Shown piece by piece: positions 8,600 through 62,199 of a stretch of DNA of 64,000 nt. Source of the DNA: Selaginella moellendorffii (taxonomy: Eukaryota; Plantae; Lycopodiophyta); NCBI RefSeq assembly GCF_000143415.4, contig NW_003314381.1:292649-356648 (forward strand). Reading direction: 5' to 3'. The notes below the pieces were generated by a model that was not told where the DNA came from, made no database searches, and was given only the letters and a program-made list of their open reading frames with translations. The stretch's first letter is position 1; each line of letters starts with the position of its first letter. Made by a program: the position numbers and the translations under genes.

Positions 8600-9800
8600 C
8601 TTAATTTTACATGATTTGCTAAACTTGAAATGGACCAATTCACTTGCCACACCACTATGAAAGATAATTTTACCCCATTATCTACCACAAACAACACAAA
8701 CCCTATACCCAAATTATCCAAAGTTTGCAATGGTCTCTTTTAAATCCAAACTTGCATCTATAGACATATTGCAATTGCAAGCTTGCAAAGTCTATTTACT
8801 TGCTTTAGATACCATGATCAAGGCTTGGACTCTCCATAAATTTTATAACTTAAGCAATTGCCCTATATAATCAAAACTCTATAAGCAAAGGAATCAATCT
8901 CTTGCAATCCATCTTTCATGGTCCATATCCATTTACATAAAAAGTACTAAAGCAAACCAAATGTTGCCAGCAAAATTCTATAAATTTCAGACTATATATT
9001 CTAAATTATAATCAAAATAATCTCATATGTAATACTAGACATTGCCCAGCATGGTTGGCAAAGTTTATTTGATTCACATATTATCAATAATCTCTTACTG
9101 GATCTCTAGGGCAACATCCAAATCCACATAGCTTTTCTAGCACTAATTGTGACATTTAGGATCTGCATAAAGCAAATATAAAGCTTGGAGGAAATGCCTT
9201 TTGAAACTATAAAACATGTCATGATATCCTCACAACCTAGATTCTCACCATTTACAGCACCTCACTATTGTCTATACCAAGCAACTTGCATATAAGGGGC
9301 AAACTTTGCCCTAATATCCTTCCAGTTCAAAGCTATAAGATGACTAATGACTTTTATAATTAATTATATGTTCACATCTTGATAAATTACAAATTGGACA
9401 CTGAGTTTGAACTAGAGCAAGTAAACTAAAGATTATGAAGAGTTGAAAGCACATATATGCTCAGGAATCCTTCTCTTGCCATGGAGTGCTGATATTAAGC
9501 TTAAGAACCTGTGTCATAGCAGCTTGACTTGAGGCAATAAGTAGAAAACATAATGTGGTTATTCACAGAGGCAATTGGCAAAAGCAAGTGCAATAGCAAC
9601 ATGCCCAGCTCACTTAAGACTGGACAATATTTTAGCTAGAGCTAACAATCTTGTTTACTGTCCCACTACCATGAAATTCCTAATTCAAACATTGACCTTA
9701 AGTTCATATGAAGATTGACATGTGCATTTGGAATACGATCACCAACTTTGTTTAGCACTCTTCACAAGCCAACACCTTAATGCATATTTGTATGGTTGAA
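8600..9800 (-). pseudogene. Possible relic of a CACTA/En-Spm (Tnp2-like) transposase
   Basis: Hand-translated minus-strand fragments CPICNLSR...WKDIRAKF...QPCW...NLWRV...GYRVCVVC follow the order of Tnp2 motifs. There are many stops and frameshifts. A partial second copy lies at ~17750-18430. Confidence 0.3.
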
Positions 9801-10310
9801 ATTAAACTTTTAATTCACAACTTTCCTTGCAAATCCATGAAGCACTATCAATCTTGCATGAATCCCAACCTTCACTCCAAGCCATTGAGAATTGAAGGAG
9901 TGGCCCTACTTAGTGGAAGTGGAATTGAGATTGAGGAAGCAAAAAGTGGCATTTTGATTCTTAGCATATCACATGTGTTAAATTTCTCAGAACACAACAA
10001 TCATTGGCCAAAACAAAACAACCTCAAAATATTTCAATAAGACATAGTTAAAGAAATAGCTTTTTGACAAATACCCCCCCATCCAACAGCTGCCATTTGG
10101 ATCTAATGGCCTAAAAAGTTGGGCAACTCATCTCTCTTTAGTGCCAGAAGTATTTATTAGTTAAACTAACTACATCATATTAATTTGGTTTGCTTAAGCA
10201 AATCAGTGAGTGAGTGGATATACATAAAATATGTTTATAATTTAGAAATTTTCCTAAACACTTCTTAGTATATTCTAGATTATTCTACCATCAAATGGGA
10301 TTAATCTTGT

Positions 10311-10363
10311 GTTTATAAATTATAAACATGTTTATAATTATAAACATGTTTATAATTATAAAC
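10311..10363. repeat. AT-rich tandem palindromes (TTATAAACATGTTTATAA)
   Basis: The self-complementary unit is repeated in tandem. Related motifs recur at 18850-19240. Confidence 0.7.
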
Positions 10364-10388: not shown

Positions 10389-11212
10389 TTAAAATCTATA
10401 TTTCATATTGTACAAGAAAAGAAATAGGGATTGTATGATAAAACGTCTAGAATCCTTATCAAACAATGCATCTGAACGGTCAGCACAGAGAAACTTTTTG
10501 GAATGGAATTTCTTCACCTTAGTGATAAATGTAGGCTTTTTACCTTCTTTGATGCAATCAGCCAAAGTTTTTCTCATGCTGATGAGATAAAACCAGTGGT
10601 ACAGGTCCCAGGTCATAGAGCTCATGTAGCCTTTCATTTGTATTGCAGCTATGGATTCTGCCACGAGTTGAGCTTGAGGATTATGACTTCTGAGTTGAAG
10701 ATGATCAGAGGTTTTGTCTTCAGTAGCTACCGTGATCACTTCATCTTCCACACACGAATCTGAACTTACTTCCTTTTGGCCGTCTAACATCTGCAGTGGA
10801 ATGGTGACTCTAGTCCTTATAGAGGAACCATTCCTGTCATAATCTAAGAACTCCAACAACCTCCCACCTCGATGGCACAAGACTCATGTCTCTGGTGAGC
10901 TCTAGTGGCAGAGATGATGTCCTTCACAAGTAATTCTACAACACGAGACCTAAATGAGATCTCTGCAGTAGATAAGCTCAGATAAACGTCTAAAAGATCC
11001 AGATCTAAAAACTCTTGAACTTCCTCTGCAACGACGGTGCATGGTGGTTCACCAAAGAATTCCTCGAAGGACCTAACTTCTGTGATCTCGAATTTAAAGA
11101 AACCCACTTCCCTGTCGACCCAAGAAGATCCCACTCCCTTGCCCTTGCCTGACTCTTTCCTTTTCCTCATAGGGTTCCTTTTAGGGTTTGAGCAAATTTC
11201 TTTTATAGGCAC
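10389..11212 (-). pseudogene. Frameshifted copy of the PD-(D/E)xK-like nuclease-fold gene
   Basis: Two overlapping ORFs (10844-11212 and 10389-10880) match the intact 346-aa ORF at 55412-56452. There is a 4-bp deletion near 10862 and a further deletion near 10595. Confidence 0.85.
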
Positions 11213-11373
11213 AATCCACTCCAGTAATCTGAACTCCTTTTGCCGAGGTACGGTGTTTCGCCCAGTTCCTCGAGTCTGTCAGTGGTCTGTCACTAGCGAA
11301 GATGGAGTTCTTTTTGCTAGGAACTCATTGTGCTGGTGAACTTGTCTGATCGAGGGGAACTGAACTCCCTTCA

Positions 11374-16390: not shown

Positions 16391-16399
16391 TCTTCTCCC

Positions 16400-17192
16400 A
16401 AGGTTTCTTCCGCGATGGATATCTTTCAAAAATTGTTGGAGTTTCTTGATTACCTCTATAAGGAATTTGGCATTAATGCCCGTGGCTCAGAACATCTGAT
16501 TTGGTTCCACAATGATAAAAGTTTTTAGAACACTTCTTCACAGATGACTCCTTTGCTATGATCATGCAAAAGTATCCTGCTTGGGATGGTGAGCTAACCA
16601 TCTTCTATAAATCTTTTCTTTTGAGTGTTTTCCAGGTACATAAACTCAGGTTTATGTGAGAATGATCCAAACTTCTTGATCGAGAAAAGCAGTAGAAGGC
16701 TGTGATCGATTATCCGCAGGGGATTGCTGTGCGTAGCAATGGAGTTGAGACGAAAAGCAAGCTGGAAAGTAAAACCAAGCTTCAGAAGGGATGCAAGCGA
16801 TCCGGAAGACACTATTTTGCTCATTTTTGCAGAACAAGGAGGACAATGCGATGTTCAAGCAGGTTCTTGGTTTCGTAGTTTCTCCAGGCAGTTTTTATTT
16901 CCTTGCGCCCGATTCGGCAGATTGCATTCGAACTGGATGTCACTGTCTGCCCCACAAGATAATTGTCCACGCGAAGTCTATACTTTTCATCTCGATTGAC
17001 TTTAAGTTTTTTCTTTCCGTTTAGCTGAGGCTGATGACATCCTGGGTATTTGTTTGCAATGTCTGGTATGCAGAGCCACAAACAAACGATGCACCAATAG
17101 GATTCTTGGAGAAGCATGCAAAGAGCACATAACTTTATATTTATATTCCTTTTAGAGTCTACAATAGCAAAACGAGCTAAAGTTACAAAAGT
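16400..17192 (+). pseudogene. GPAT9: Third, partial GPAT9-like pseudogene copy
   Basis: Colinear with 11545-12360 from 'caaggtttcttccgcgatggatatc'. The FPEGTC codons are deleted. Confidence 0.8.
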
Positions 17193-17387: not shown

Positions 17388-19244
17388 TAGGGATAGTGTG
17401 TAAGTCAAGTATGGCCAATTAATCTAAAGTATAGTTTAGCTCTCACTTGTTGTCTTTGTTTTACATCTGTCTTGGGTTTAAGTTTAATATCCATACTATG
17501 CTATTTTGTGGAGTATATATATCTTTGCATTAGTCCACTAATATACTGAAATAACACTAGACTTCATTTGATTATGTTTTATGTGTTAGTTCTGGCATTA
17601 GAATGTTAGAAACCTTAGGACTATATCAAGTCACTTCTCATAAGTTGCTTTTTACTCCAATTCCTTTACTCTTTCGCTATATGCTTAAGTGTTTAGCTCT
17701 GTCCTTTATTCAGTGGCTCAAGGCTTTGAAGCTCAAGTTCCATTTTGAGGGTAGCATCCAAATCCATGCAACTTTTCTAGCACTAATTGTGATGTTCAGG
17801 ATCTGCATATAGCAAGTATTAAGTTTAGAGGAAATGCCTTTAAAACTATAAAACACATCATGATATCCTCACAACTTAGATTGTCACCATTTGCAACACC
17901 TCACTATTGTCCATACCAAGCAGCTTGCTTTGCCCCAATATCCTTCCAAATCAAAGCTGTAAGATGACTATGAATGATCTAATGACTTTTACAATCAATT
18001 ATATGTTCACATTCTGATAAACTACAAATTGGATACTAAGTTCGAGCTGGAGCAAGTAAATTATAGACTATGAGTTTAGCCAAGAGTTGAAAGCATATAT
18101 ATGCTTGGGACTCTTTCTCTTGCCATGAAGTGCTGATATGAAGCTTAAGAACCTGTGTCATAGCAGCTCAACTTGAGGCAGCAAGTAGAAAACATGGTGT
18201 GGTTATTCATGGAGGCAAATGGCAAAAGCAAGTGTAATAGCAACATGCCCAGCTCACTTAAGACTGGAAAATATTTTAGCTAGAGCTAACAATCTTGTTT
18301 ACTGTCCCACTACCAAGAAATTCCTAATTCAAACATTGACCTTAAGTTCATGTGGAGATTGACATGTACCTTTGGAATCTGATCACTAACTTTGTTTAGC
18401 ACTCTTCACAAGCCAGTTCCTTAATGCATTTTTGTATGGTCAAATTTAAATTTTAATTCACAACTTTGTGTGCAAATCCATGGAGCACCATAGCCATCAA
18501 GAATTAAGGGAGTGGCCCTGTTTAGTGGGAGTGGAATTAAGATTGAGGAAGCAAAAAGTGCCATTTTGATTCTTTCCAAATCTGCATGTCACATATGTTA
18601 AATTTCTCATAATACAACAATCATTGGCCAAAACAAAACCTTATCAAAATATTTCAATAAGACATAGTTTAAGAAATCAGAGTACCCCTCCATTTGGATT
18701 TAATGGCCTAAAAAGTTGGGCAACTCAGTGCCAGGTATAAAAAGTATTTATTAGTTAAACTAACTATAGTTTCCACATACTAATTATTGCCAACATTTTT
18801 GGTTTGCTTAAGCAAATCTGTAAGGGGAGTGAGTGGATATACATAAAATATGTTTATAATTTATAAATTTTCCCAAAGATGTCTTAGTATATTCTAGTTT
18901 ATTCTACCATCAAATGAAATTTATCTTTTTTTTGTTTGCTTAAGCAAGGTAATTGATATACCTAAAAATATTCTACCATCTAACAATTGTTATTCATTTA
19001 GATTAATTTTGTATTTATAATTTATAAATATGTTTATAAATTATAAACTTGCTTAAACACTTTCTAGTATATTCTTTTTTATTCTACCATCTTGCAATAA
19101 GATTAATCTTGTGTTTATAAATTATAAAATTTTATTTGATCAATTAGATTAATAAGTAAGTATAACATTACTATTAAGCAAACCAAGCATTGCTACATGC
19201 AACACATAAAAATTATAAACATATTTATAATAATAAACTTCCAT
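17388..19244. repeat. Segmental duplication, copy 2, left part (continues at 55356)
   Basis: Homologous to 7990-8380 and 9110-10370. It ends at 'aaacttccat', and the equivalent site in copy 1 (~10361) has no insertion. Confidence 0.85.
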
Positions 19245-52100: not shown

Positions 52101-53074
52101 CAGACCCTGAGGGGTTTGGTGAGCTCCAAAAGTATAGTAAGGGGGAGGACTACAGTGGAGCTAGTTTGGCCAAGAAAGGCTAGTTTGGCCCAGGAAGGCC
52201 AGACCCAGTGTTGGGTGATGAACTGACCACTGGGAAGTCCAAGACTAGAGTGAATACAGACCGACAAGTGAGGTAGCTTGGTGAAGTGTTCAAGAGCCGG
52301 CTCTAGTTCCCCCGAGAGATCGACTGGCCGATGCTCCCAGTCCAAGTGTGGGTGGCACTACCTACTTGGATACCAGGCGTGGCTCAATGGAACCTCGCTC
52401 TAAGCCCATGGCTAGAGCACCTAAAGGCGGAAGGTGGGGAGAGTACCCACAGGGCTCGCGTAGGCCCACGGTGTTCCGAAATGTTGTCCCGGAGTCTCAA
52501 ATGGGGGAAAGGAGGAGGAGCAGTCCTCTAGTGTAGTGACTAAGGATACAGTCACATGGTGAGGAAGTCCCAAAGGACCATGGGACTTAGTGGTTGGGCC
52601 TGTGGGCCTTGATCTAGTGGCAGTGTTGGCGAACATGGCCATGGACAAAAAAGGGACTTGGTAGGAACTGACAAAGGGATATTTGGGAAGGCTATTCCCC
52701 ATGTTTGTGGGCATCCTAAGGATGCTAAGGAGTGGATCTGGGATGACCACTCGTGGACGGATGGCCCAGTCTTGGAGAGACAAGATTGTGATGCAAGTGG
52801 TATTGGACCACTAGTGCGGCAAAGGTGATTGGGCATGGCCTTAGCGTAACAGGCTGCTATGTCAGTGGCACCTTTGAGTGTTGGTCATGGGATCGGACAC
52901 GTGGAGCACTTGGACCAGGTGCAAGGGTTGAGTGGCATGGATGCCATTCTTGGGGCTAGCAAGTCCCAAGTCCTGAATTGGACTTATGGAGGTTGTGAAT
53001 GAGACTCCTCCAAGTGGTCAGAGGTGTGGTTAAGTGACTAAAGTAGAATGGAAAATTTAGTCGCTTACAGCTTG

Positions 53075-54016
53075 GTGAACCAATGACTTCGCCCCAGACG
53101 ATCCAAAAGATCAGCAGTGTGAGGAAGAGGGTACACATCCGGGATCATTACGTCGTTTAACGGATGATAGTTGATATAAAAACGAATACACCCATCATGC
53201 TTCGTCACAAGATGAGGTTCACATGCCCAAGGACTCCGTGACTTCCGAATAACACCCTTCTCCAACATCTCCTTGACATTTGCATGTAAAATCTTGATCT
53301 CCTTTAGTGACCGATGACGAACAGGAACCTTGATTGGATGAGCATCCCCAATTGGAATCGGATGACGTATGGCAATCTTGGCTCCAAACGATAGGTCAAA
53401 GTCAAAGAGATCAGAATACTCCTTCATGAGCCGGTCAGCTGCTGCAACACAAAGATCATTGGAGGGATCGGAAAAGGGAAGAGTAGAACAAGATGGAAAC
53501 ATAAGAGGAAAAAGTGGGGGAACAAAAGTAATGGAAGCAGAGGTAAAAGTAGAGGGACAAAGAGGTACGGAAGTGAGAGGAATGGATGAAACATAAAGAA
53601 GTATGAGACAAGGGGGAGAAGCCTCAAAGTCATACTTGGCATGATTGCGTTGCAACCAATCCATACCAAGAATAAGGTCAAAAACTTGACTTGGCACCAC
53701 CCGCAACGACTGCAACTCAAGCTCGAGATCGCCCACACGCACAACCAGGGTCTGCCTCATCCCGTGCACATGCATGTGTATGGCCGTTGCCATAAAGAAT
53801 GAAAACTAGTTCCGCCGCACGACGCAAGTATAGATGACAACGTGTGGCAACAAGTCGAGCAATAGAAGATAAACTCGAACCTATATCAACCAATCTTGTT
53901 ATAAAGATGAGCTTGGAAAGTAAACACTGGATGAACTGGTGCCGAGTGAACCCCTTGATGATACTCCTGAAAGAAAGATGGAGGGGTCACTGATTTATTC
54001 GCGCAAGGTCTCTCCG
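53075..54016 (-). pseudogene. Host pol 5' segment: aspartic protease and RT N-terminus
   Basis: LVDIGSS (degenerate DTG), FDLILGMDWL, MLEKGVIRKSRSPW, RFYINYHPLNDVMIPDVYPLP. Confidence 0.9.
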
Positions 54017-54961
54017 TTACTCATGCGACTCCTCGTTTCCCGGATGCATCTTGGTGTCCAAACCTTCCATTGCAGCAGCACCAACGGGATGTTGCTGATG
54101 CCAAGGTCTCCACCCAGAAAATGGAGGTCGCCAATCCGGAAAATGCCGAAAACGCCGATAAGTATGACCAACTTCATCACATGCCCAGCAGCGAACATCA
54201 TGGCCACGACCACATCCTCGCCTTTGGCCTTGGACTCGAGCAGCAGCAGCATCAACCTCCATTGGAACAAGACCATCACCCACAGAAAGTGGAGCTGAAG
54301 GACGTGCAGCGAGAAGTGGAAGAGGCGATGTCTCATAACGTTGTGCCAAGCAAAGAGCATCGTCAAGGGTGGCAGGAGCAAGTGCATGCACAAGTCCGAC
54401 AAGATCTTGACGAAGTGCTGGCCACAACATTCCTAGCTTGATCCGTTCTGACATATTTGGCTCCACACGAAGCAAAAGACTTCGGAAATAAACACTAAAT
54501 TGCATCACCGACTCAAATGGCCCTTGGCAAAAACAATGCAATTGTTAGAAGGCATCATCACAGTCGTCGGTGTGTCCGAAGGCACGTTTGAAGACGTCTG
54601 GGAGAACACTCCAATCCCCACGAGTGGCTGCGCTCAAACTATTGTACCACTGCAATGCCGTCCCTTGAAAACACGTGGGAAACTCACGCAAACGTCGATC
54701 ATCATCCCAAGAATGATATGTGGCAATCACCGTGAAGTGATCGAACCAATGGTACACATCATCCCCAAGATTCCCACGAAAGAACTTTAGCCGAACGCGA
54801 GGATTAGCACCAAGAGTAGGAGGAGTTGTACCATGTGCCGTGAACGCCACCATCAACTGAGTTTGGTTGTTCAGTTGCAAGCGCATAGCATCAAGCAATT
54901 GTACCAACTGCTGCTCCAGAGTCAAAGGAGGAGATTGCTGATCTGCCATGAAGACGAACAA
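54017..54961 (-). pseudogene. Host gag (one in-frame stop at 54545)
   Basis: Retrotransposon gag motifs (FRG...W, F.GTALQWY), PMEVD, and the degenerate zinc knuckle CWACDEVGH. Confidence 0.9.
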
Positions 54962-55159
54962 AGAAAGAGCAAAAGAAGATAAATGACAAAAAGTTGAAAG
55001 GAAATAGTAGATTTAGACAATGCAAAAAGCTAGATCTAAACCAAAATCCTGAAAGGAAAGAACAAAATAAAAGAAATGGAAAAAACTAGATCTAGACGAT
55101 GCAAAAACTAGATCCAAACCAAAATCCCAAATCCAAGCACTCCCCAGGGACAATCAAAA

Positions 55160-55178
55160 GTGCCCTTCACCTCCACCA
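55160..55178 (-). promoter_or_regulatory. Host PBS, tRNA-Ala-like (TGGTGGAGGTG)
   Basis: Adjacent to the 5' LTR and complementary to a tRNA ending ...CUCCACCA. Confidence 0.6.
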
Positions 55179-55179
55179 A

Positions 55180-55351
55180 TGTGAGTGCATGGAACATGGA
55201 AAGGGAATATAGAAATGTGCATATCAATTAGCCCAAAAACCCTAGCTATACAGGAGCGAGTGGTCCGGATTGAAACCAATCCGACGGCTACTAAAATCCC
55301 ACAATGCTAATATTAATATATGGCATTGTAGCCATACATTTGGCCCTCACA
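55180..55351 (-). repeat. 5' LTR of the host gypsy element (172 bp)
   Basis: Direct repeat of 19245-19419 with TG...CA ends. Confidence 0.95.
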
Positions 55352-55411
55352 CCATCTGATTAATTAAATTAATAAATAATAAATATTAAAATAAAAAATA
55401 TTATTAAAAAT

Positions 55412-56452
55412 TTATATTTTATATTGTCCAAGAAACTTTTTAAAAGAAATAAGGGATTGTATGATGAAACGTCTAGAATCCTTAAGAAACAATACATCTG
55501 AAGGGTCAGCACAGAGAAACTTTTTGGAACGGAATTTCTTCACCTTAGTGATAAATGTAGGCCTTTTACCTTCTTTGACGCAATCAGCCAAAGTTTTTCT
55601 CATGCTGATGAGATAAAACCAAGGAAGAGTTCCCACAAAAACGATTCCAGGAAATACAATATCTTCCAGTGGTACACGTAGGTCATAGAGCTCATGTAGC
55701 CTTTCATTATCTTGCATTGCAGCTATGGATTCTGCCATGAGTTGAGCTTCAGGATTATGAAGATGATCAGAGGTTATGTCTTCATCAGAGGTTTTGTCTT
55801 CAGTAGCTACCATGATCTTTACCATGGTCACTTCATCTTCCACACACAAATCTGAACTTACTTCCTTTTGGCCGTCTAACATCTGCAGTGGAATGGTGAC
55901 CCTAGTCCTTATAGAGGAACCATTCCTGTCATAATCTAAGAACTCCAACAACCTCTTACCCACATCGATGGCACAAGACTCACGTCTCCGGTGAGCTCTA
56001 TTGGCAGAGATGATGTCCTTCACAAGTAATTCTACAACACGAGACCTAAATGAGATCTCTGCACTAGATGAGCTCAAGTAAACGTCTATAAGATCCAGAT
56101 CTAAAAACTCTTGAACTTCCTCTGCAAAGACAGTGCATGGTGGTTCACCAAAGAATTCCTCAAAGGACCTAACTTGCGTGATCTCGAATTTAAAGAAACC
56201 CAATTCCCTGTCGACCCAAGAAGATCCCATTTCCCTGTTAGCCCGAGAAGATCCCACTTCCCTGTGAGCCCGAGAAGATCCCACTTTCCTGTGAGCCCGA
56301 GAAGTTCCCACTTCCTTGCCCTCGTCTGACTCTTTCCTTTTCGTCCTTGCCATAGGGTTCCTTTCAGACTCTTTCCTCTTCCTCTTTGCCATAGGGTTCT
56401 TTGCCATAGGGTTCCTTTCAGGGTTGATACGTTTTATACGTGGCAAGGGCAA
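55412..56452 (-). CDS. Intronless 346-aa protein, putative PD-(D/E)xK restriction-endonuclease-like fold, resembling a fungal uncharacterised family
   Basis: Intact ORF. Motifs GSSW...EL...FFG, IRTR.TIPL, SDLCV...ATEDK, PEAQLMAESIAAMQ.N and PGIVFVGT.PWFY. The family assignment comes from recalled motif similarity, not from a search. Confidence 0.65.
   Translation of the reverse strand: MPLPRIKRINPERNPMAKNPMAKRKRKESERNPMARTKRKESDEGKEVGTSRAHRKVGSSRAHREVGSSRANREMGSSWVDRELGFFKFEITQVRSFEEFFGEPPCTVFAEEVQEFLDLDLIDVYLSSSSAEISFRSRVVELLVKDIISANRAHRRRESCAIDVGKRLLEFLDYDRNGSSIRTRVTIPLQMLDGQKEVSSDLCVEDEVTMVKIMVATEDKTSDEDITSDHLHNPEAQLMAESIAAMQDNERLHELYDLRVPLEDIVFPGIVFVGTLPWFYLISMRKTLADCVKEGKRPTFITKVKKFRSKKFLCADPSDVLFLKDSRRFIIQSLISFKKFLGQYKI
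56220..56315 (-). repeat. 27-bp in-frame tandem repeat (VGSSRAHRE-like, ~3.5 units) in the N-terminus of the nuclease-like ORF
   Basis: Unit gaagatcccacttccctgtgagcccga. Copy 1 has a single unit. Confidence 0.85.
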
Positions 56453-56559
56453 GGCACAATCCGTAATCTGAGCTCGAGTCTGTCAGTGGTCTGTCACTCG
56501 CGAAGATGGCTTTTTGCTAGGAACTCATTGTGCTGGTGAACTTGTCTAATTGAGACTGA

Positions 56560-57520
56560 ACTCCCTTCAATGCTGCAGCTTTACGTCCCAGCGAGGGATT
56601 CTCAATCGAATGCCGTGTGAGATATTCTCACCTGGCACTTGCCCACTCAGGGCAACTGTCGCGCTTGTTTGGCGGAAAACCAACTCAGAAATCTCTGAGC
56701 ACTCTCAGGCTGGCAAAGTTTCGTTAATGCAGAACATTTGATTTGGTTCCACAATGATAAAAGTTTTTAAAACACTCTTCACGGATGACTCCCTTTTCTA
56801 TGATCATGCAAAAGTATCCGGCTTGGGATGGTGAGCTAATCATCTTCTATAAATCGTTTCTTTTGAGTGTTTTCCAAGTACATAAACTCAGGTTTATGAA
56901 CCAAGCTTCTTGATCGAGAAAAAGCAGTGGAAGGCTGTGATCGATCATCCGCAGGCGTAGCAATGGATTTGAAACGAAAAGCACAAAACCAAGCTTCGGA
57001 AGGGATGCAAGCGATCCGGAAAGCACTATTTTGCTCATCTTGCCAGGGGACTTGCGTAAACAAGGACGACATTGTGATGTTCAAGCAGGTTCTTGATTTC
57101 GTAGTTTCTCCAGGCAGTTCTTATTTCCTTGCGCTCGATTCTGCAGATTGCATTCGAACTGGATTTCACTGTCTGCCCGTTGCTATCAAAGTAAAACAAG
57201 ATAATTGTCCACGCTAAGTCTATACTTTTCATCTCGATTGACTTTAAGTTTTTTCTTTCGTTTAGCTGAGGCTGATGACATCCTGGGTAGTCGTTTGCGA
57301 TGTCTGGTATGTGGAGCCACAAACAAACGATGCACCAATAGGATTCTCAAAGAAGCATGCAAAGAGCACTCTTTTTCGTCATAAATTTATATTCTATATT
57401 CCTTTCAGAGTCTGCGATAGCGAAACGAGCTAAAGTTACAAAAGTCGCTTTGAAATACTAACGTCCAAGCTCGAAACTCACAGAAGAAGAATAACAACTC
57501 AACGTGGTGCCATTGGAAAA
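56560..57520 (+). pseudogene. GPAT9: GPAT9-like pseudogene, copy 2
   Basis: Colinear with copy 1. GTCVNKDDIVMFKQ, FELDFTVCPVAIK and LRLMTSWVVVCDVWYVEPQ are present, with a frameshift in the FPEG codons. Confidence 0.8.
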
Positions 57521-58622
57521 TGTAAGATTCTTGCTTTGTTTTGTCTAAGTTTTGCGTGGAAAGCCTGTAGCTTACGCGTTTTTCCTCCACGGGCCAGAGA
57601 AACTCCCCTAGATCATGCTAAGAAGATTAAAAACAAAGACAAATCCATGGAATGATCGACGGGGTATTTTTCTTGCGTTTTTTATTTTTTGTTTCGATGA
57701 AAGAAGAAAAAATCTCCGCTCCTCTCATGTGCAATAATGGGCCGGCTTGGACCATTGAAATGGGAGATCATGAGCGCGTATTAAGAGAAGATTTTGAAGA
57801 AGTAGCTCTCCAACTTATAGTGGTGGTGGTCACTGTTCTTCACGCGAGCTTGCGACGTTTGTGTGTTTGTTCTCGTAGCAGTGGATCGCGACACATGTGT
57901 CAAGGACCGTTTGATAATGGGGAATCGAAATGGTGACGGCCTTGTCGTGTTGTCCCATGGCCACTGTGGCCCAACCTCTTCGTACAACGCGCAAGAATGC
58001 CACCGTACGGTCTTGCTAAGCCAACTAAATAACAGGCGCTTGTAAGAAAAAAAGAAATTTTGTTCCTGACATGACATGAACGAATCGTAGCTAGTTATTG
58101 TTTTCTTTTGTGGCCTGCAAGGTGAGTGGATGCCAGCCGGTACTTGCCACGTGGCCGCTACGTCCACGTCATGCGGCCCGCCCGGCATTATGGCTTCCCG
58201 GGTTTGCAAGGCAATCTAGTTCGCTGGAATGTGACGCGCTAGTCCTGTCACCAAAAAGTATGAGTCTGGGATGCATATTCCGTCTGCCAGGTGGCAAGCA
58301 GCGTCAATTCTGCCGTGTGCTAACCATGGCGGCTGGCTGCATGAGAGGGAAATCAAGCCGGCTTTGCTGAGGAGCTCTTCGTCGCCACTAGGGCTAGAGA
58401 CGACTAGAGATAGGGCGATGATCGATTCCTCCCCTTTCCACGCATAGATGGATCGATCGGGCGCTCTGGTAGGTATCACACGGATCTGATCTAGGCTAGA
58501 TCGTACATTTGCGGGGAAGGGACAGGGATTGCGATCGATCGATCGTTCTGTGACCGAAATATCGCGGCTAGAACAGGCTATTTCCAGGGTCGCAAAGAAA
58601 TTCTAGCACAGAGGCAGCAAGA

Positions 58623-61124
58623 ATGTCCGCGCCAGCGCCTAGTCCTCCAGCCGGGGGAGGAGGAGGAGCTCCACCGCCGGCTGTTCCATCGGCTCCAGCT
58701 CCAGTGCCGCCAGTCTCACCTCCTCCTCCAGTAGCTCCCGTTGTTCCTTCCTCTCCGCCTCCTACTACTGGTCCGCCTGTCGATCCATCTCCTCCTCCTC
58801 CTCCTGTTCTTCCTGGCACACCTCCTGCTCCTCCGGCCTCTCCTCCGCCGGCTATAGTCAATCCTCCGCAAAATCCAGCTCCAGGCACTCCATCCGCGCC
58901 AACACCGCCCATTCCATCAACGCCAACGCCTCCTTCTCGGGGATCTCCTCCGAGAACACCAAGTACTGGCAATGGTGGTGGAAACCCAGCGACTGGCGAT
59001 AGCGGCGGCGGCGGCGGCAATAGCCCGATTACCACTGGCGCGATTGTGGGGATTTCCGCGGCCGGGATTTTGATCTTGATCGTGCTCGCGCTGGTGGTTT
59101 GCTGCCTCCGAAGGAAGCCCAAGAGGAAGTATAGACGAGATGACCACGAGTATGGATCCGGGCAATACAAAGCTGGTAAAGTTTCTTCCTCTCCCTTTTG
59201 CTTGCGTGCTTTTCTTCATCTTTGTTTTTCAAGCTATCTCTTTTTGCATGAGTGCTTTTCTTCTTGATAATGTTCCACTCGGCTTTTGCCAGCTTTAGGG
59301 AATGCAGGCGACATGTTCTAAAAGTTTTCTTGCGTGTTCCAGAGATGTATGAAGCTGGCAGGAGACCAAGACCAGATCATTATGGCCACAAGCCTCCTCC
59401 GCCACCACCGCCGCCGCCGCCGCCTCACAAGCATTACGCGTATGGCTCTCCAGTTCCGCCACCACCTCCGCCACCTCCGCCGCCACCGCCGCACTATAGC
59501 AGCTCGGGAAGCCAGGATTCCTGGAGGCCAGTTCCGCCACCACCACCACCGCCCGGTATGAGCCCGGGCATGGGTAGCTCCAGGTCGTGGTTCACGTACG
59601 AGGAACTTGAGGCAGCGACTGCTGGATTCTCCAGGGCCAATCTTCTCGGCGAGGGTGGTTTTGGCTGTGTATACAAGGGATTTTTACCTGGTGGACAGGT
59701 TGTGGCTGTGAAGCAGCTTAAAGTTGGAAGCGGCCAAGGAGAGCGTGAGTTTCGAGCCGAGGTTGAGATTATCAGCAGAGTTCATCACAGGCATCTGGTT
59801 TCGCTGGTTGGATACTGCATTGCTGATGCTCAGAGGCTGCTGGTTTACGATTTCGTGCCAAATGGAACGCTGGAGCATCACCTGCACGGTACAAGTTTTT
59901 GTCCGTGTTTTTCCTTGTTCTCAGTCTCGTTTTCTCTCTTGTTTTTTTCAGGTAAAGGTAGACCCGTGATGGATTGGCCAACAAGATTGAAAATAGCTTC
60001 TGGTTCTGCTCGTGGACTAGCATATCTTCATGAAGACTGTAAGATCTCTATCTCTCCGTTGGAACTTAATCTAAAAGTCATTCGTTCTTGCAGGCCATCC
60101 TCGAATCATTCATCGGGACATAAAGTCGTCTAACATTCTTTTGGATAATAATTTTGACGCTCAGGTTTGTTGTTACATATTTGCTCACTTGCTTTCAATT
60201 GTAACGCTTGTCCATTACAGGTCTCTGACTTTGGGCTTGCGAAGCTCGCTTCTGACACTTACACACATGTCACTACTCGAGTTATGGGAACCTTCGGGTA
60301 AGGACATAACCAACCAAATATATCAGTTTCCCATATGAATTTTTCAAACTTCCAGGTACCTTGCGCCTGAGTACGCCTCCACAGGAAAACTGACGGAGAA
60401 GTCAGACGTGTACTCCTTTGGAGTCGTCCTACTGGAACTTATAACGGGAAGGAGGCCTGTAGATACCACGCAACGTGTGGGAGACGAAAGCTTGGTCGAA
60501 TGGGTGAGTCTTTGCAAAAGCTCATTCCTGGACTTTCTAAAACTTATTGCCTCTTTCAGGCACGACCATACCTCACGCAGGCTATCGAGAATGGCGACCT
60601 CGACGGCATAGTCGACGAAAGACTAGCAAACTACAACGAGAACGAGATGCTACGAATGGTCGAGGCGGCTGCAGCCTGCGTTCGACACTCAGCCAGCAAA
60701 CGCCCAAGGATGGCACAGGTTTGTTTGCCTCTTTGTTTCTCGAGCAACTACTAAACTCCTCGCATTCTTCTTTCAGGTTGTCCGCGCTCTAGAAAGCGAT
60801 GGAGCAATCTCCGGCCTCAACCAAGGAGTAAAGCCAGGCCACAGCTCGAACTTCACGAGCGCGGACTACGATAGCAACCAGTACGCCTCGGACATGAAAA
60901 GGTTCCGAAAGGCGGTGTTTGGAAGCCAAGAACACGGGAGCTCCGAGCACAGTGGCCCGCCGACGAGCGAGTATGGGATGAATCCCTCGGTGTCGAGCAG
61001 CGAAGGGATGAGTAGCATGGAGATGGAGAGGCGGCGGGCCGGGCTGCTCAGGAGTTCGGACACGACGAGCTCCAGCGAGATCAATGCCAACACCAACACC
61101 AGTGATCGTCTCAATGGCCGGTAA
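58623..61124 (+). CDS. PERK: Proline-rich extensin-like receptor kinase (PERK family), multi-exon, apparently intact
   Basis: Pro-rich ectodomain without a signal peptide, TM helix, and kinase motifs [37 protein letters not shown] introns, e.g. 59176-59342 and 59889-59951. TAA ends at 61124. Confidence 0.93.
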
Positions 61125-61260
61125 AGTTTCGAGAGGAAAGATCACAGGGAAGAAGAGAAGATTTTTCTAAGTTACTGGCAAGAACTTTTTGATCATACGA
61201 CGTTGTCTCGTTTGTACAATATATTTTATCGACCTTGGAGAGTTTCTAGGGTTCTTGGGA

Positions 61261-62199
61261 ATGGCTGCTTGGCTTCCTCTTCCTCCGCGATGGCCGGGCT
61301 TGCGCGCCTCGGTTCTTTGCAAGGCCGGGGAGAAGAAAGCGCCCGCGCGGCTCGTCCAGAAGCAGCAGATGATCTCCAGCCGGGAGGAGGCGGCGGCCGA
61401 GGCGGATTATGGCAATCAGCCCATCCCTCGGCTCTCGATCGGTGAGTTTCTTGGAGCTGGGAAGGGATTTCGGCTGAGGTTTTCGTTCTAGATCATGTGA
61501 CTGTGAGCTTTGCGAGGAGTGGAGGTGCTGGCGGCCAAAATGTGAACAAAGGTTTAATTTTTTCGGTGTTTGGGACTTTGGTGATTGGAATTTCTTCTTT
61601 GACAGTGAACACGAAAGTGGACATGCGATTCAATGTGGTGAACGCGCACTGGCTTCCTCTCCAAGTGAGGAACAAGCTGCTTCAAACGGTTTGTCACGAT
61701 CTTTGAAATGTGAGGCTGTCTAGTAGTTTGGAATGAGTTTTTCTATACTAATTCCATTCCGTTTCGTGAACAGGAGAAGAACCGGATCAACAGCGACGGT
61801 GAATTGGTCATTTCTTCGACAAGAACAAGGACACAAAAGTAAACCGAATGTCACAAGAGAGAAAATACTCACCTTTTCTTGCCAGGGGAAACATCGATGA
61901 TGCTCTAGCTAAATTGCAGGCAGGTTTTCATCGCGCTTTGTTTCTTCGGCAGCTAAGTTTGTTTCTTCTCTTTGTTTACCAGGAATTAGTTGATGCTGCA
62001 GCTTATGTGCCACCGCCTCCATCTAAGGAGACCAAGCAACGAATTGCAAGGCTGTGAGTTATCTTATTTCTTGCGAGTCTTTCCCAGAACTTAAACTTGG
62101 ATTTTTAGTGCTGCTGCCGAAGACATGAAGAGACTCCAGTCCAAGAAACTGTCTGCTCTCAAGAAATCGGCGAGGAGAGACAAAGGAAGCTGGGACTGA
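61261..62199 (+). CDS. Organellar ICT1/ArfB-type peptidyl-tRNA hydrolase (RF-1 domain, ribosome rescue), 7 exons
   Basis: Transit-peptide-like N-terminus, FARSGGAGGQNVNKVNTKVDMRF, NRINSDGELVISSTRTRTQ, and a basic tail RLQSKKLSALKKSARRDKGSWD*. Confidence 0.92.

Follow-up and report, generated by a model that had tools for sequence, protein, structure and literature searches.

An intronless gene with a restriction-endonuclease-like fold in the lycophyte Selaginella moellendorffii, with relatives in fungi and on giant-virus-like contigs

Introduction

The question raised by this locus is how an intronless gene, whose relatives lie in fungi and on virus-like contigs, came to stand among ordinary plant genes, and whether it has been kept there as a working gene. 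It lies in a window of 64,000 nucleotides of Selaginella moellendorffii (contig NW_003314381.1, positions 292,649 to 356,648; window coordinates are used below) and consists of an intact open reading frame (ORF) of 346 codons on the minus strand at 55412..56452. The start of this frame is a mechanical TTG; from the first ATG, at 56407-56405, the product has 331 amino acids (aa). A first-pass annotation had read the ORF as a fungal-like nuclease of the PD-(D/E)xK fold, possibly shared with giant viruses and acquired horizontally by the plant, and as either mobile-element cargo or a co-opted nuclear nuclease that stayed open while its neighbour decayed. The present analysis points to a transcribed, single-exon foreign PD-(D/E)xK gene that was acquired, duplicated and kept. 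This reading, in which nuclease activity, a nuclear location, a benefit to the plant and both the donor and the direction of the transfer are presumed, is considered likely.

The gene, its fold and its putative catalytic site

Translation recovered the uninterrupted 346-aa frame together with all of the motifs that had been quoted for it. The gene and its conserved elements are as follows.

55412..56452, minus strand: intronless ORF for a stand-alone protein with a modelled PD-(D/E)xK fold (translation, family membership)
55415..56230, minus strand: conserved family domain, ORF residues 75-346, the modelled part (alignments, structure model)
55964..55981, minus strand: ESCAID (E158, D163), start of the first core helix; E in 111/135 family members
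55835..55855, minus strand: SDLCVED, core strand 2, with D201 as the putative metal-binding Asp; D in 111/135, N in 16/135
55793..55807, minus strand: ATEDK, end of core strand 3, with E218-x-K220 as the (D/E)xK motif; E in 104/135, K in 105/135
55706..55753, minus strand: PEAQLMAESIAAMQDN, helix after the catalytic strands; Q237 in 118/135 members, N249 in 122/135
55613..55651, minus strand: PGIVFVGTLPWFY, beta-hairpin of core strands 4 and 5; F in 130/135, Y in 123/135

The conserved domain is the portion that the ORF has in common with its viral and fungal homologues, and the beta-hairpin is the best-conserved block among the 135 members. No Pfam match was obtained for the ORF at E<=1. An AlphaFold2 model of residues 75-346, made from a 30-sequence alignment, reached a predicted local distance difference test score (pLDDT) of 88.9 and a predicted template modelling score (pTM) of 0.87, and its elements (H84-97, E105-117, E120-132, E138-144, H160-181, E190-199 and E202-211 in model numbering) follow the order of the core alpha-beta-beta-beta-alpha-beta fold. 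A structural scan independent of Foldseek (VIA-align), covering 48,161 chains of the Protein Data Bank (PDB), returned 20 chains at Z>=5, and those with names are nearly all PD-(D/E)xK nucleases, two mitoribosomal chains excepted. These two, 3j7y_5 and 7a5f_s3, presumably mL37 and mL65 (mS30), head the list with Z of 12.6 and 12.5 and 207-212 residues aligned over model positions 1-272; they also rank first in Foldseek, where PD-(D/E)xK nucleases are listed as well. Further matches of the scan are BpuSI (Z 9.8), DrdV (8.9) and an HsdR fragment (8.2), and NucC, McrC, Shedu/SduA, Hjc, Vsr, Cas4 and many type II enzymes also appear.

In a shape search of the ESM Atlas, Basidiomycota and Mucoromycota clusters reached template modelling (TM) scores of 0.77-0.84, while the score of an HSDR_N cluster was 0.53; a feature search agrees. 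Among the viral structures of BFVD distant phage PD-(D/E)xK proteins were the only matches, with no close giant-virus or chlorovirus model there, and the PDB sequence search with the family profile gave nothing meaningful. The model and its nuclease matches confirm that the protein has the restriction-endonuclease (PD-(D/E)xK) fold that had been proposed for it. The catalytic positions lie where the fold requires them, with E158 in the first core helix, D201 in strand 2, E218-x-K220 at the end of strand 3 and Q237 in the next helix. These five residues are kept in 77-87% of the 135 members, and all of them are present in the window ORF. Retention of the full E...D...ExK...Q set suggests that the product would most likely still bind Mg2+ and cut DNA.

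The part upstream of the conserved domain is of a different kind.

56199..56417, minus strand: Lys/Arg-rich N-terminal extension with tandem repeats of 27 nt x4.3, 39 nt x2 and 15 nt x2 (repeat analysis)

This extension is absent from the viral and fungal homologues and varies between the Selaginella paralogues, whose N-termini are unlike that of the ORF (acidic in P0002, Ala-rich in P0004; P and L numbers are the handles of family proteins and of sampled loci). It holds a KRKRK-type stretch resembling a nuclear localisation signal, and to judge from its composition this plant-specific, repeat-built N-terminus would probably direct the protein to the nucleus.

Transcription

Twenty public runs from seven studies contain the nuclease stretch. 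The assembly sizes of these runs fit transcriptomes, and it is in this sense that they are called probable RNA below.

55457..56709, strand not assigned: stretch on which contigs of probable RNA runs lie colinear with the genome (four runs, four studies)
55766..55802, minus strand: 18-nt x2 duplication in the loop after EDK, with in-frame length variants in other haplotypes/strains

In the same four runs the flanks at 54600-55170 and 56770-58000 are uncovered, and there is no joint within the conserved domain in the probable-RNA contigs. Coverage restricted to the ORF and its 5' side, and colinear with the genome, is the pattern of an unspliced transcript and unlike that of genomic DNA; the gene looks transcribed and unspliced. 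One run (contig X1) carries an allele of the P0001 type, which differs by five substitutions and by one inserted codon that keeps the frame. In another run 6 nt are deleted in frame within the duplicated loop, and contig X3 skips 31 nt in the N-terminal extension.

Distribution of the family

A word-index homology search returned two Selaginella paralogues from the ORF and five proteins from the alignment, and the family emerged only through an exhaustive HMMER search with a three-sequence profile. Counted as cluster representatives, this search gave 430 members at E<=1e-3, of which 96 pass <=1e-10 and 11 pass <=1e-30, numbers that place the ORF well beyond chance. About 30 of the 150 listed profile matches carry an organism label, the remainder being metagenomic. 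The labelled members include Agaricomycetes (Amanita, Lactarius, Hebeloma), Mucoromycota/Mortierellomycota, Zoopagomycota and chytrids, with Cunninghamella, Podila, Conidiobolus, Smittium and the chytrids Clydaea and Boothiomyces as the early-diverging fungi; the fungal family proposed by the first-pass annotation is thereby borne out, with the Atlas label reading 'Mucoromycota' where the annotation had named Glomeromycota. Selaginella itself is represented by EFJ33594, EFJ07452, EFJ19886, SELMODRAFT_418720 (P0001) and SELMODRAFT_418717 (P0002). No other plant was found among the approximately 30 labelled of the 150 listed matches or among the 11 at E<=1e-30, and within that sample there are thus no land-plant orthologues that follow the species tree.

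The family protein is about 260 aa long and has the consensus ES.VDD ... pD(V/I)C(V/I) ... LLVQEDK ... PEAQ(L/V)IAEAIAAFQ.NN ... PGI.M.GT.PTFY. Neither Pfam domains nor fused domains were found in 30 family members or in 10 longer members. The family is unnamed and without a Pfam model, and with this ORF the PD-(D/E)xK superfamily gains a new, uncharacterised member.

Virus-like and fungal surroundings of the relatives

At least ten dense virus-like soil contigs carry the family, often with 2-10 copies each. The closest non-Selaginella proteins, P0003 (E 1.8e-53) and P0007, are encoded on contigs of 87 and 31 kb (L001 and L002) that are dense and free of introns, and their neighbours there are the N-terminal half of Rpb1, DUF5757, Rpb2, an SNF2/DEAD helicase, HIRAN, XPG and MutS. 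The Rpb2 of L001 groups in Nucleocytoviricota RNA-polymerase clusters. A metagenome scan yielded 79 additional loci, 20 of them of at least 8 kb. Eight of these 20 are dense (coding fraction 0.73-0.92), and six of the eight (L014/15/17/24/26/55) carry a trifunctional-type capping enzyme, helicase, Rpb1/Rpb2, family-B DNA polymerase (PolB), SNF2 or DUF5757, usually with 2-5 family copies; the other 12 loci have the appearance of fungal nuclear DNA. A pattern scan of IMG/VR gave a single locus, contig L003, with one family copy. The presence in giant viruses that had been thought possible thus has its counterpart in soil contigs with Rpb1/Rpb2, PolB and capping enzyme. These contigs are named 'giant-virus-like' because no capsid gene was seen in their sampled stretches.

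Protein P0023, from the Agaricomycete-rich group B described below, is located on a dense soil contig known from two assemblies (31.5 kb at ENA, L008; 54.5 kb at JGI, L009). At L008:8515-17275 (= L009) at least ten tandem family paralogues are interleaved with small protein kinases beside a family-B DNA polymerase, an array that, by analogy, resembles the multigene-family expansions of large DNA viruses.

A shared block was observed at L001:2497-8997, L002:1-5367 and L026:5531-9717, consisting of the N-terminal Rpb1 half and a DUF5757 protein, together with a compact Rpb2 of about 930 aa on L001 and L002. The Rpb1 pieces on the three contigs are 599-673 aa long, and those of L001 and L026, which were scanned in full, span domains 1 to the start of 5. 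In this they recall the large RNA-polymerase subunit of giant-virus-like insertions in moss, which is split into RP1n and RP1c (PMC4083422). The name of the source contig of L001 ends in '_c', and it may be a circular assembly of 86.9 kb.

Fungal copies were found in more than one kind of surroundings. The Cunninghamella protein P0006 is in ordinary fungal DNA, beside intron-bearing DnaJ/TMEM18 genes. In the chytrids, the Boothiomyces copy (L011:2987-8055) is beside a protein-primed PolB (PF03175) and the Clydaea copy (L007:1-10860) beside a family-B PolB (PF00136), on contigs that are short, AT-rich and gene-dense, with introns in the Clydaea genes. These chytrid contigs may be viral, plasmid-like or Polinton-like elements rather than fungal chromosomes; neither genus, nor nucleases, are mentioned in the Mycodnaviridae paper. 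In a tree of 103 rows, which is unrooted, the viral copies are scattered through the family and basal to several clades of copies in fungal context, a placement which suggests that the family has a primary home in viruses.

Origin of the Selaginella copies

Trees of the family were made in a quick version of 135 rows and a careful one of 40. All Selaginella sequences fall in group A, together with early-diverging fungi and virus contigs, and a strongly supported branch parts this group from group B, which is rich in Agaricomycetes. The seven Selaginella rows are united in a single clade (ultrafast bootstrap (UFBoot) 92, SH-aLRT 89), and the rows nearest to it by path are P0003 and P0007. The tree with fungal, viral and plant matches that had been called for therefore places the Selaginella clade nearest, by distance, to virus-contig proteins, and the claim of horizontal acquisition agrees with what was found, Selaginella being the sole plant among the labelled matches and its copies being nested in a fungal and viral group. 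A horizontal origin of the Selaginella family is well supported. With virus-contig proteins at the shortest distance, a giant virus may have been the donor; between a giant-virus relative and a fungus, the virus is slightly favoured.

Endogenous giant-virus sequence can be recognised by closest homologues in giant-virus genomes and by other viral genes in the host region. For the Selaginella family, the first holds of the contigs of P0003 and P0007 and of eight further virus-like contigs. As to the second, other ORFs of L001-L003 have no match in the window or in the Selaginella loci L004-L006, which hold ordinary plant genes (RPN6, eIF-1A, WD40), and a viral island around the Selaginella copies was ruled out on that ground. 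The family would have entered the Selaginella lineage by horizontal transfer from a giant-virus relative or a fungus; it then spread by local and segmental duplication to at least ten copies on at least three scaffolds, and was retained over the long term as coding sequence.

Copies, duplication and selection

The copy-number check suggested by the first-pass annotation gave at least seven intact and three broken family copies in the sampled Selaginella loci. The copy P0001 is 97% identical to the ORF and is likely the same gene in another haplotype/assembly, P0002 is 59% identical, and both are on one 1.7-Mb scaffold. All six further copies that were compared with the ORF remain open. The long-term ratio of nonsynonymous to synonymous substitution rates (dN/dS) lies at 0.22-0.35, with 0.22-0.27 for the ORF against P0002 and 0.33 for P0015 against P0011, values that indicate purifying selection, although, as Maumus et al. 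caution for their own families, part of this selection could predate the transfer and have acted in donor viruses (PMC4083422).

On GL377604, five members of three divergent subfamilies are found within about 26 kb (L012:8648-16079, L004:9974-20732), namely P0001, a broken copy, P0018, P0015 and P0002. Locus L006 (GL377685) has two intact family copies and fragments.

The most recent copy arose within the window. Self-comparison shows a segmental duplication in which 10368-16310 matches 55385-61814. Besides the nuclease gene it comprises a PERK-like, proline-rich receptor kinase gene and a remnant that resembles an acyltransferase. These last two are the plant neighbours of the ORF: the kinase at 58.6-61.8 kb (Pfam Pkinase) and the remnant, the putative GPAT9 copy of the first-pass annotation, with an FPEGTC motif and, on the equivalent fragment of the duplicate copy, a weak match to Pfam Acyltransferase (E 0.005).

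10392..11278, minus strand: broken duplicate of the nuclease gene within the segmental duplication, with at least 6 indels, including 4-nt and 47-nt deletions

A decayed gypsy-type fragment with gag, zinc knuckle, protease and reverse transcriptase (RT) lies downstream of the ORF at 53065-54961, on the same strand. The duplicated block stops at 55385, precisely at the 3' end of the ORF, and the twin copy is without gag-pol; this boundary indicates that the gag-pol fragment and a repeat array at 21-53 kb are later insertions between formerly adjacent sequences. The same gypsy fragment is found near other family copies, but with differing orientation and distances. No terminal inverted or direct repeats flank the nuclease ORF, and nucleotide similarity among the Selaginella paralogues ends at the ORF. 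Carriage of the gene as gypsy retroelement cargo was ruled out by the duplication boundaries and by the differing placement of the fragment, and carriage by a transposon by the missing terminal repeats and the lack of flank homology between paralogues, so that the suggestion of mobile-element cargo was abandoned for the adjacent retroelement and for any recognisable transposon.

Alternative explanations

With regard to the donor, the points that weigh against the reading proposed here, as far as it leans towards a virus, are that the backbone of group A is a polytomy, that the virus-like contigs showed no capsid gene, and that in approximately unbiased (AU) tests a clade of Selaginella plus virus, although not rejected (p 0.37), is not recovered in the tree, while a placement of P0004 with viruses instead of with its paralogues, making the Selaginella copies polyphyletic, is not rejected either (p 0.17). 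P0004 is 49% identical to the L001 protein, as against 41-44% to its own paralogues. A fungal donor, for example a root-associated member of the Mucoromycota or a chytrid, with the viral copies captured from fungal hosts, is a serious though less probable alternative. Group A does hold genuine fungal nuclear copies such as P0006, and a broader tree joins Cunninghamella with Selaginella and V_L001 (SH-aLRT 88); against this, the proteins nearest by both path and identity are those of virus contigs, P0003 by E value and the L001 protein by its identity to P0004, viral copies are basal to several fungal clades, and Selaginella already has one family of clear nucleocytoplasmic large DNA virus (NCLDV) origin (PMC4083422). 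That the gene is instead an ancient, vertically inherited plant gene lost in all other sampled plants, or a contaminant of the assembly, is very improbable: no other plant is present in the Selaginella clade or among the labelled matches, the contig has plant genes and plant transposons on either side of the gene that are duplicated along with it, and it recurs in a second haplotype/assembly on the 1.7-Mb scaffold and in runs from seven studies.

On the side of transcription, it counts against the proposed reading that the RNA label of the runs is a guess, with the strand of their contigs unassigned. With regard to the fate of the gene after its arrival, the recent interval tells against retention under selection. 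For the time since the last duplication (dS of about 0.06), the comparison with the pseudogene twin gives a dN/dS of 0.88, the ORF having 7 and the twin 10 derived nonsynonymous changes; the five substitutions between haplotypes, from the comparison of contig X1 with P0001, are all nonsynonymous; the chance of the ORF staying free of stops over that interval is P ~0.3; and the ORF and its twin are no more identical than the flanking DNA. These points would fit an ORF that is a recently relaxed, transcribed relic of a once functional family, now neutral and open for lack of time. Such a fate is held to be unlikely, for the indels since duplication, at least 6, are all on the twin and none on the ORF (about 0.03, two-sided, under random spread), only in-frame indels are seen in three haplotypes/strains, every catalytic residue is kept, and transcription appears in several studies of probable RNA. 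A selfish mobile nuclease, homing-endonuclease-like or carried by a transposon, that copies itself within Selaginella and does not serve the host would account for the multiple copies in viruses (up to 10 in tandem), for the expansion in fungi and for the five copies on GL377604, and could find some likeness in the PD-(D/E)xK homing endonuclease I-Bth0305I (Z 4.9 among the fold matches) and in the Boothiomyces copy that adjoins a protein-primed PolB. This explanation is improbable given the want of terminal repeats, the end of paralogue similarity at the ORF, a newest copy that stems from the duplication of a whole segment of over 6 kb, PERK gene included, and a gypsy fragment that is outside the duplicated block and differently placed near other copies. 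On balance the frame has been maintained and the amino-acid constraint is currently weak, as would be expected either of a conflict gene that evolves fast or of a gene in early relaxation, and the ORF copy is probably still functional. The earlier observation that the ORF 'stayed open while the neighbour decayed' is thus evidence of selection only in part, in view of the indels on the one hand and of the recent dN/dS of about 0.9 on the other; similarly, the proposed check of expression and dN/dS came out in favour for the probable-RNA coverage and for the long-term values of 0.22-0.35, and against for the recent one.

Comparison with known systems

HsdR-N (PF04313), BpuSI and DrdV have the same PD-(D/E)xK core as the ORF product, with E in helix 1, D in strand 2, ExK in strand 3 and Q in the next helix. 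The product differs from these Type I/IIG/IIL enzymes in being a stand-alone domain of about 260 aa without helicase, methyltransferase or specificity modules, and in being eukaryotic or viral, not bacterial; no sequence similarity to restriction enzymes was detectable by Pfam or PDB sequence searches. Membership of HsdR was rejected, as the protein is 331-346 aa long with no SF2 helicase/translocase or further domains. The mitoribosomal chains give the best whole-model likeness, yet with a sequence identity of 8-10%, and they are structural ribosomal proteins specific to animals, whereas nothing about the Selaginella protein points to a ribosomal role. The animal pair has itself been described as 'repurposed endonucleases' (PMC8998825).

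Crinkler/CR effectors, as far as the account of Zhang et al. (2016) is relayed in PMC5289972, consist of header domains and toxins with the restriction-endonuclease (REase) fold, often paired with kinases and acting in the nucleus, and occur in fungi, chytrids, oomycetes and some land plants. The ORF shares the REase fold, and on one virus-like contig small kinases are found in among 10 copies of the family. The structural link is one match, an Atlas Mucoromycota cluster at TM 0.63 to the model in which 17% of members have a Crinkler header. No header (Ubl 'Crinkler', PF20147 or other) was found in the ORF or in the 30 and 10 family members, so by architecture the ORF is not a CR protein; it may share the nuclease module with CR proteins.

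NCLDV affinity has been reported for two Selaginella families by Maumus et al. (2014) (PMC4083422). One, the EFJ26844 exoribonuclease family, has a clear NCLDV origin, with purifying selection shown for that family; the other, the EFJ10148 family of unknown function, has 23 copies and homologues in a few fungi and one chlorovirus, and was given as 'likely acquired horizontally' with its origin unresolved (PMC4083422). No other viral genes were reported near these families (PMC4083422). By its description, the EFJ10148 family fits the nuclease family in its multiple copies, its virus and few-fungi homologues and its lack of viral neighbours, and the two may be the same; the absence of a chlorovirus match in BFVD is mildly against identity, and the members met here bear other accessions (EFJ33594, EFJ07452 and EFJ19886). 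The accession EFJ10148 was not found beyond Maumus et al. (2014) in the literature searched, and P0018 was ruled out as its bearer by its position beside P0015 on GL377604. The nuclease fold and the link to soil virus contigs are absent from that paper.

Significance

The ORF family is one more foreign gene family of virus or fungus type in Selaginella, and an example of a foreign nuclease that has been kept, expressed and duplicated in a vascular plant. Whether giant viruses ever infected land plants can so far be judged from a handful of genomic footprints only, in a moss and in Selaginella, to which this family adds one. As its nearest relatives are on present-day soil virus-like contigs bearing a moss-type split Rpb1, that question can be put to the test on actual viral genomes. 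A large family is also defined here (at least 430 clusters) of probable nucleases without a Pfam model, common to giant-virus-like genomes and fungi and often massively duplicated, which is a candidate player in virus-host or inter-organism conflict. A bolder reading, offered tentatively and thought rather doubtful, is that the gene is a domesticated giant-virus nuclease from split-RPB1 soil Nucleocytoviricota like those behind the moss endogenous copies, whose relatives still circulate in soils, and that Selaginella would now use it in defence or genome conflict as a DNA nuclease targeted to the nucleus. If that were true, the family would serve as a marker of the link between the giant viruses of today's soils and early land-plant hosts.

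Other features of the window

Between the window and the corresponding region of GL377604 identity is 93-97%, but the structure differs. An array of about 32 kb at 21265-53076 consists of nested and tandem copies of one repeat of about 2-7 kb, with 83-99% identity between copies; it is rich in Gly/Ser/Asp/Leu microsatellite-like ORFs, and where the locus appears on GL377604 the array is either missing or collapsed. An additional duplicated block matches 9108-10314 with 17748-18933, and the upstream segment of the segmental duplication has a third partial copy at 16399-17192. Immediately 3' of the ORF, a repeat of about 180 bp at 55176-55356 recurs by the family copies of L004, L005 and L012 at 80-89% identity. 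It is covered by separate transcript contigs with unrelated loose ends, and is probably a transcribed dispersed repeat.

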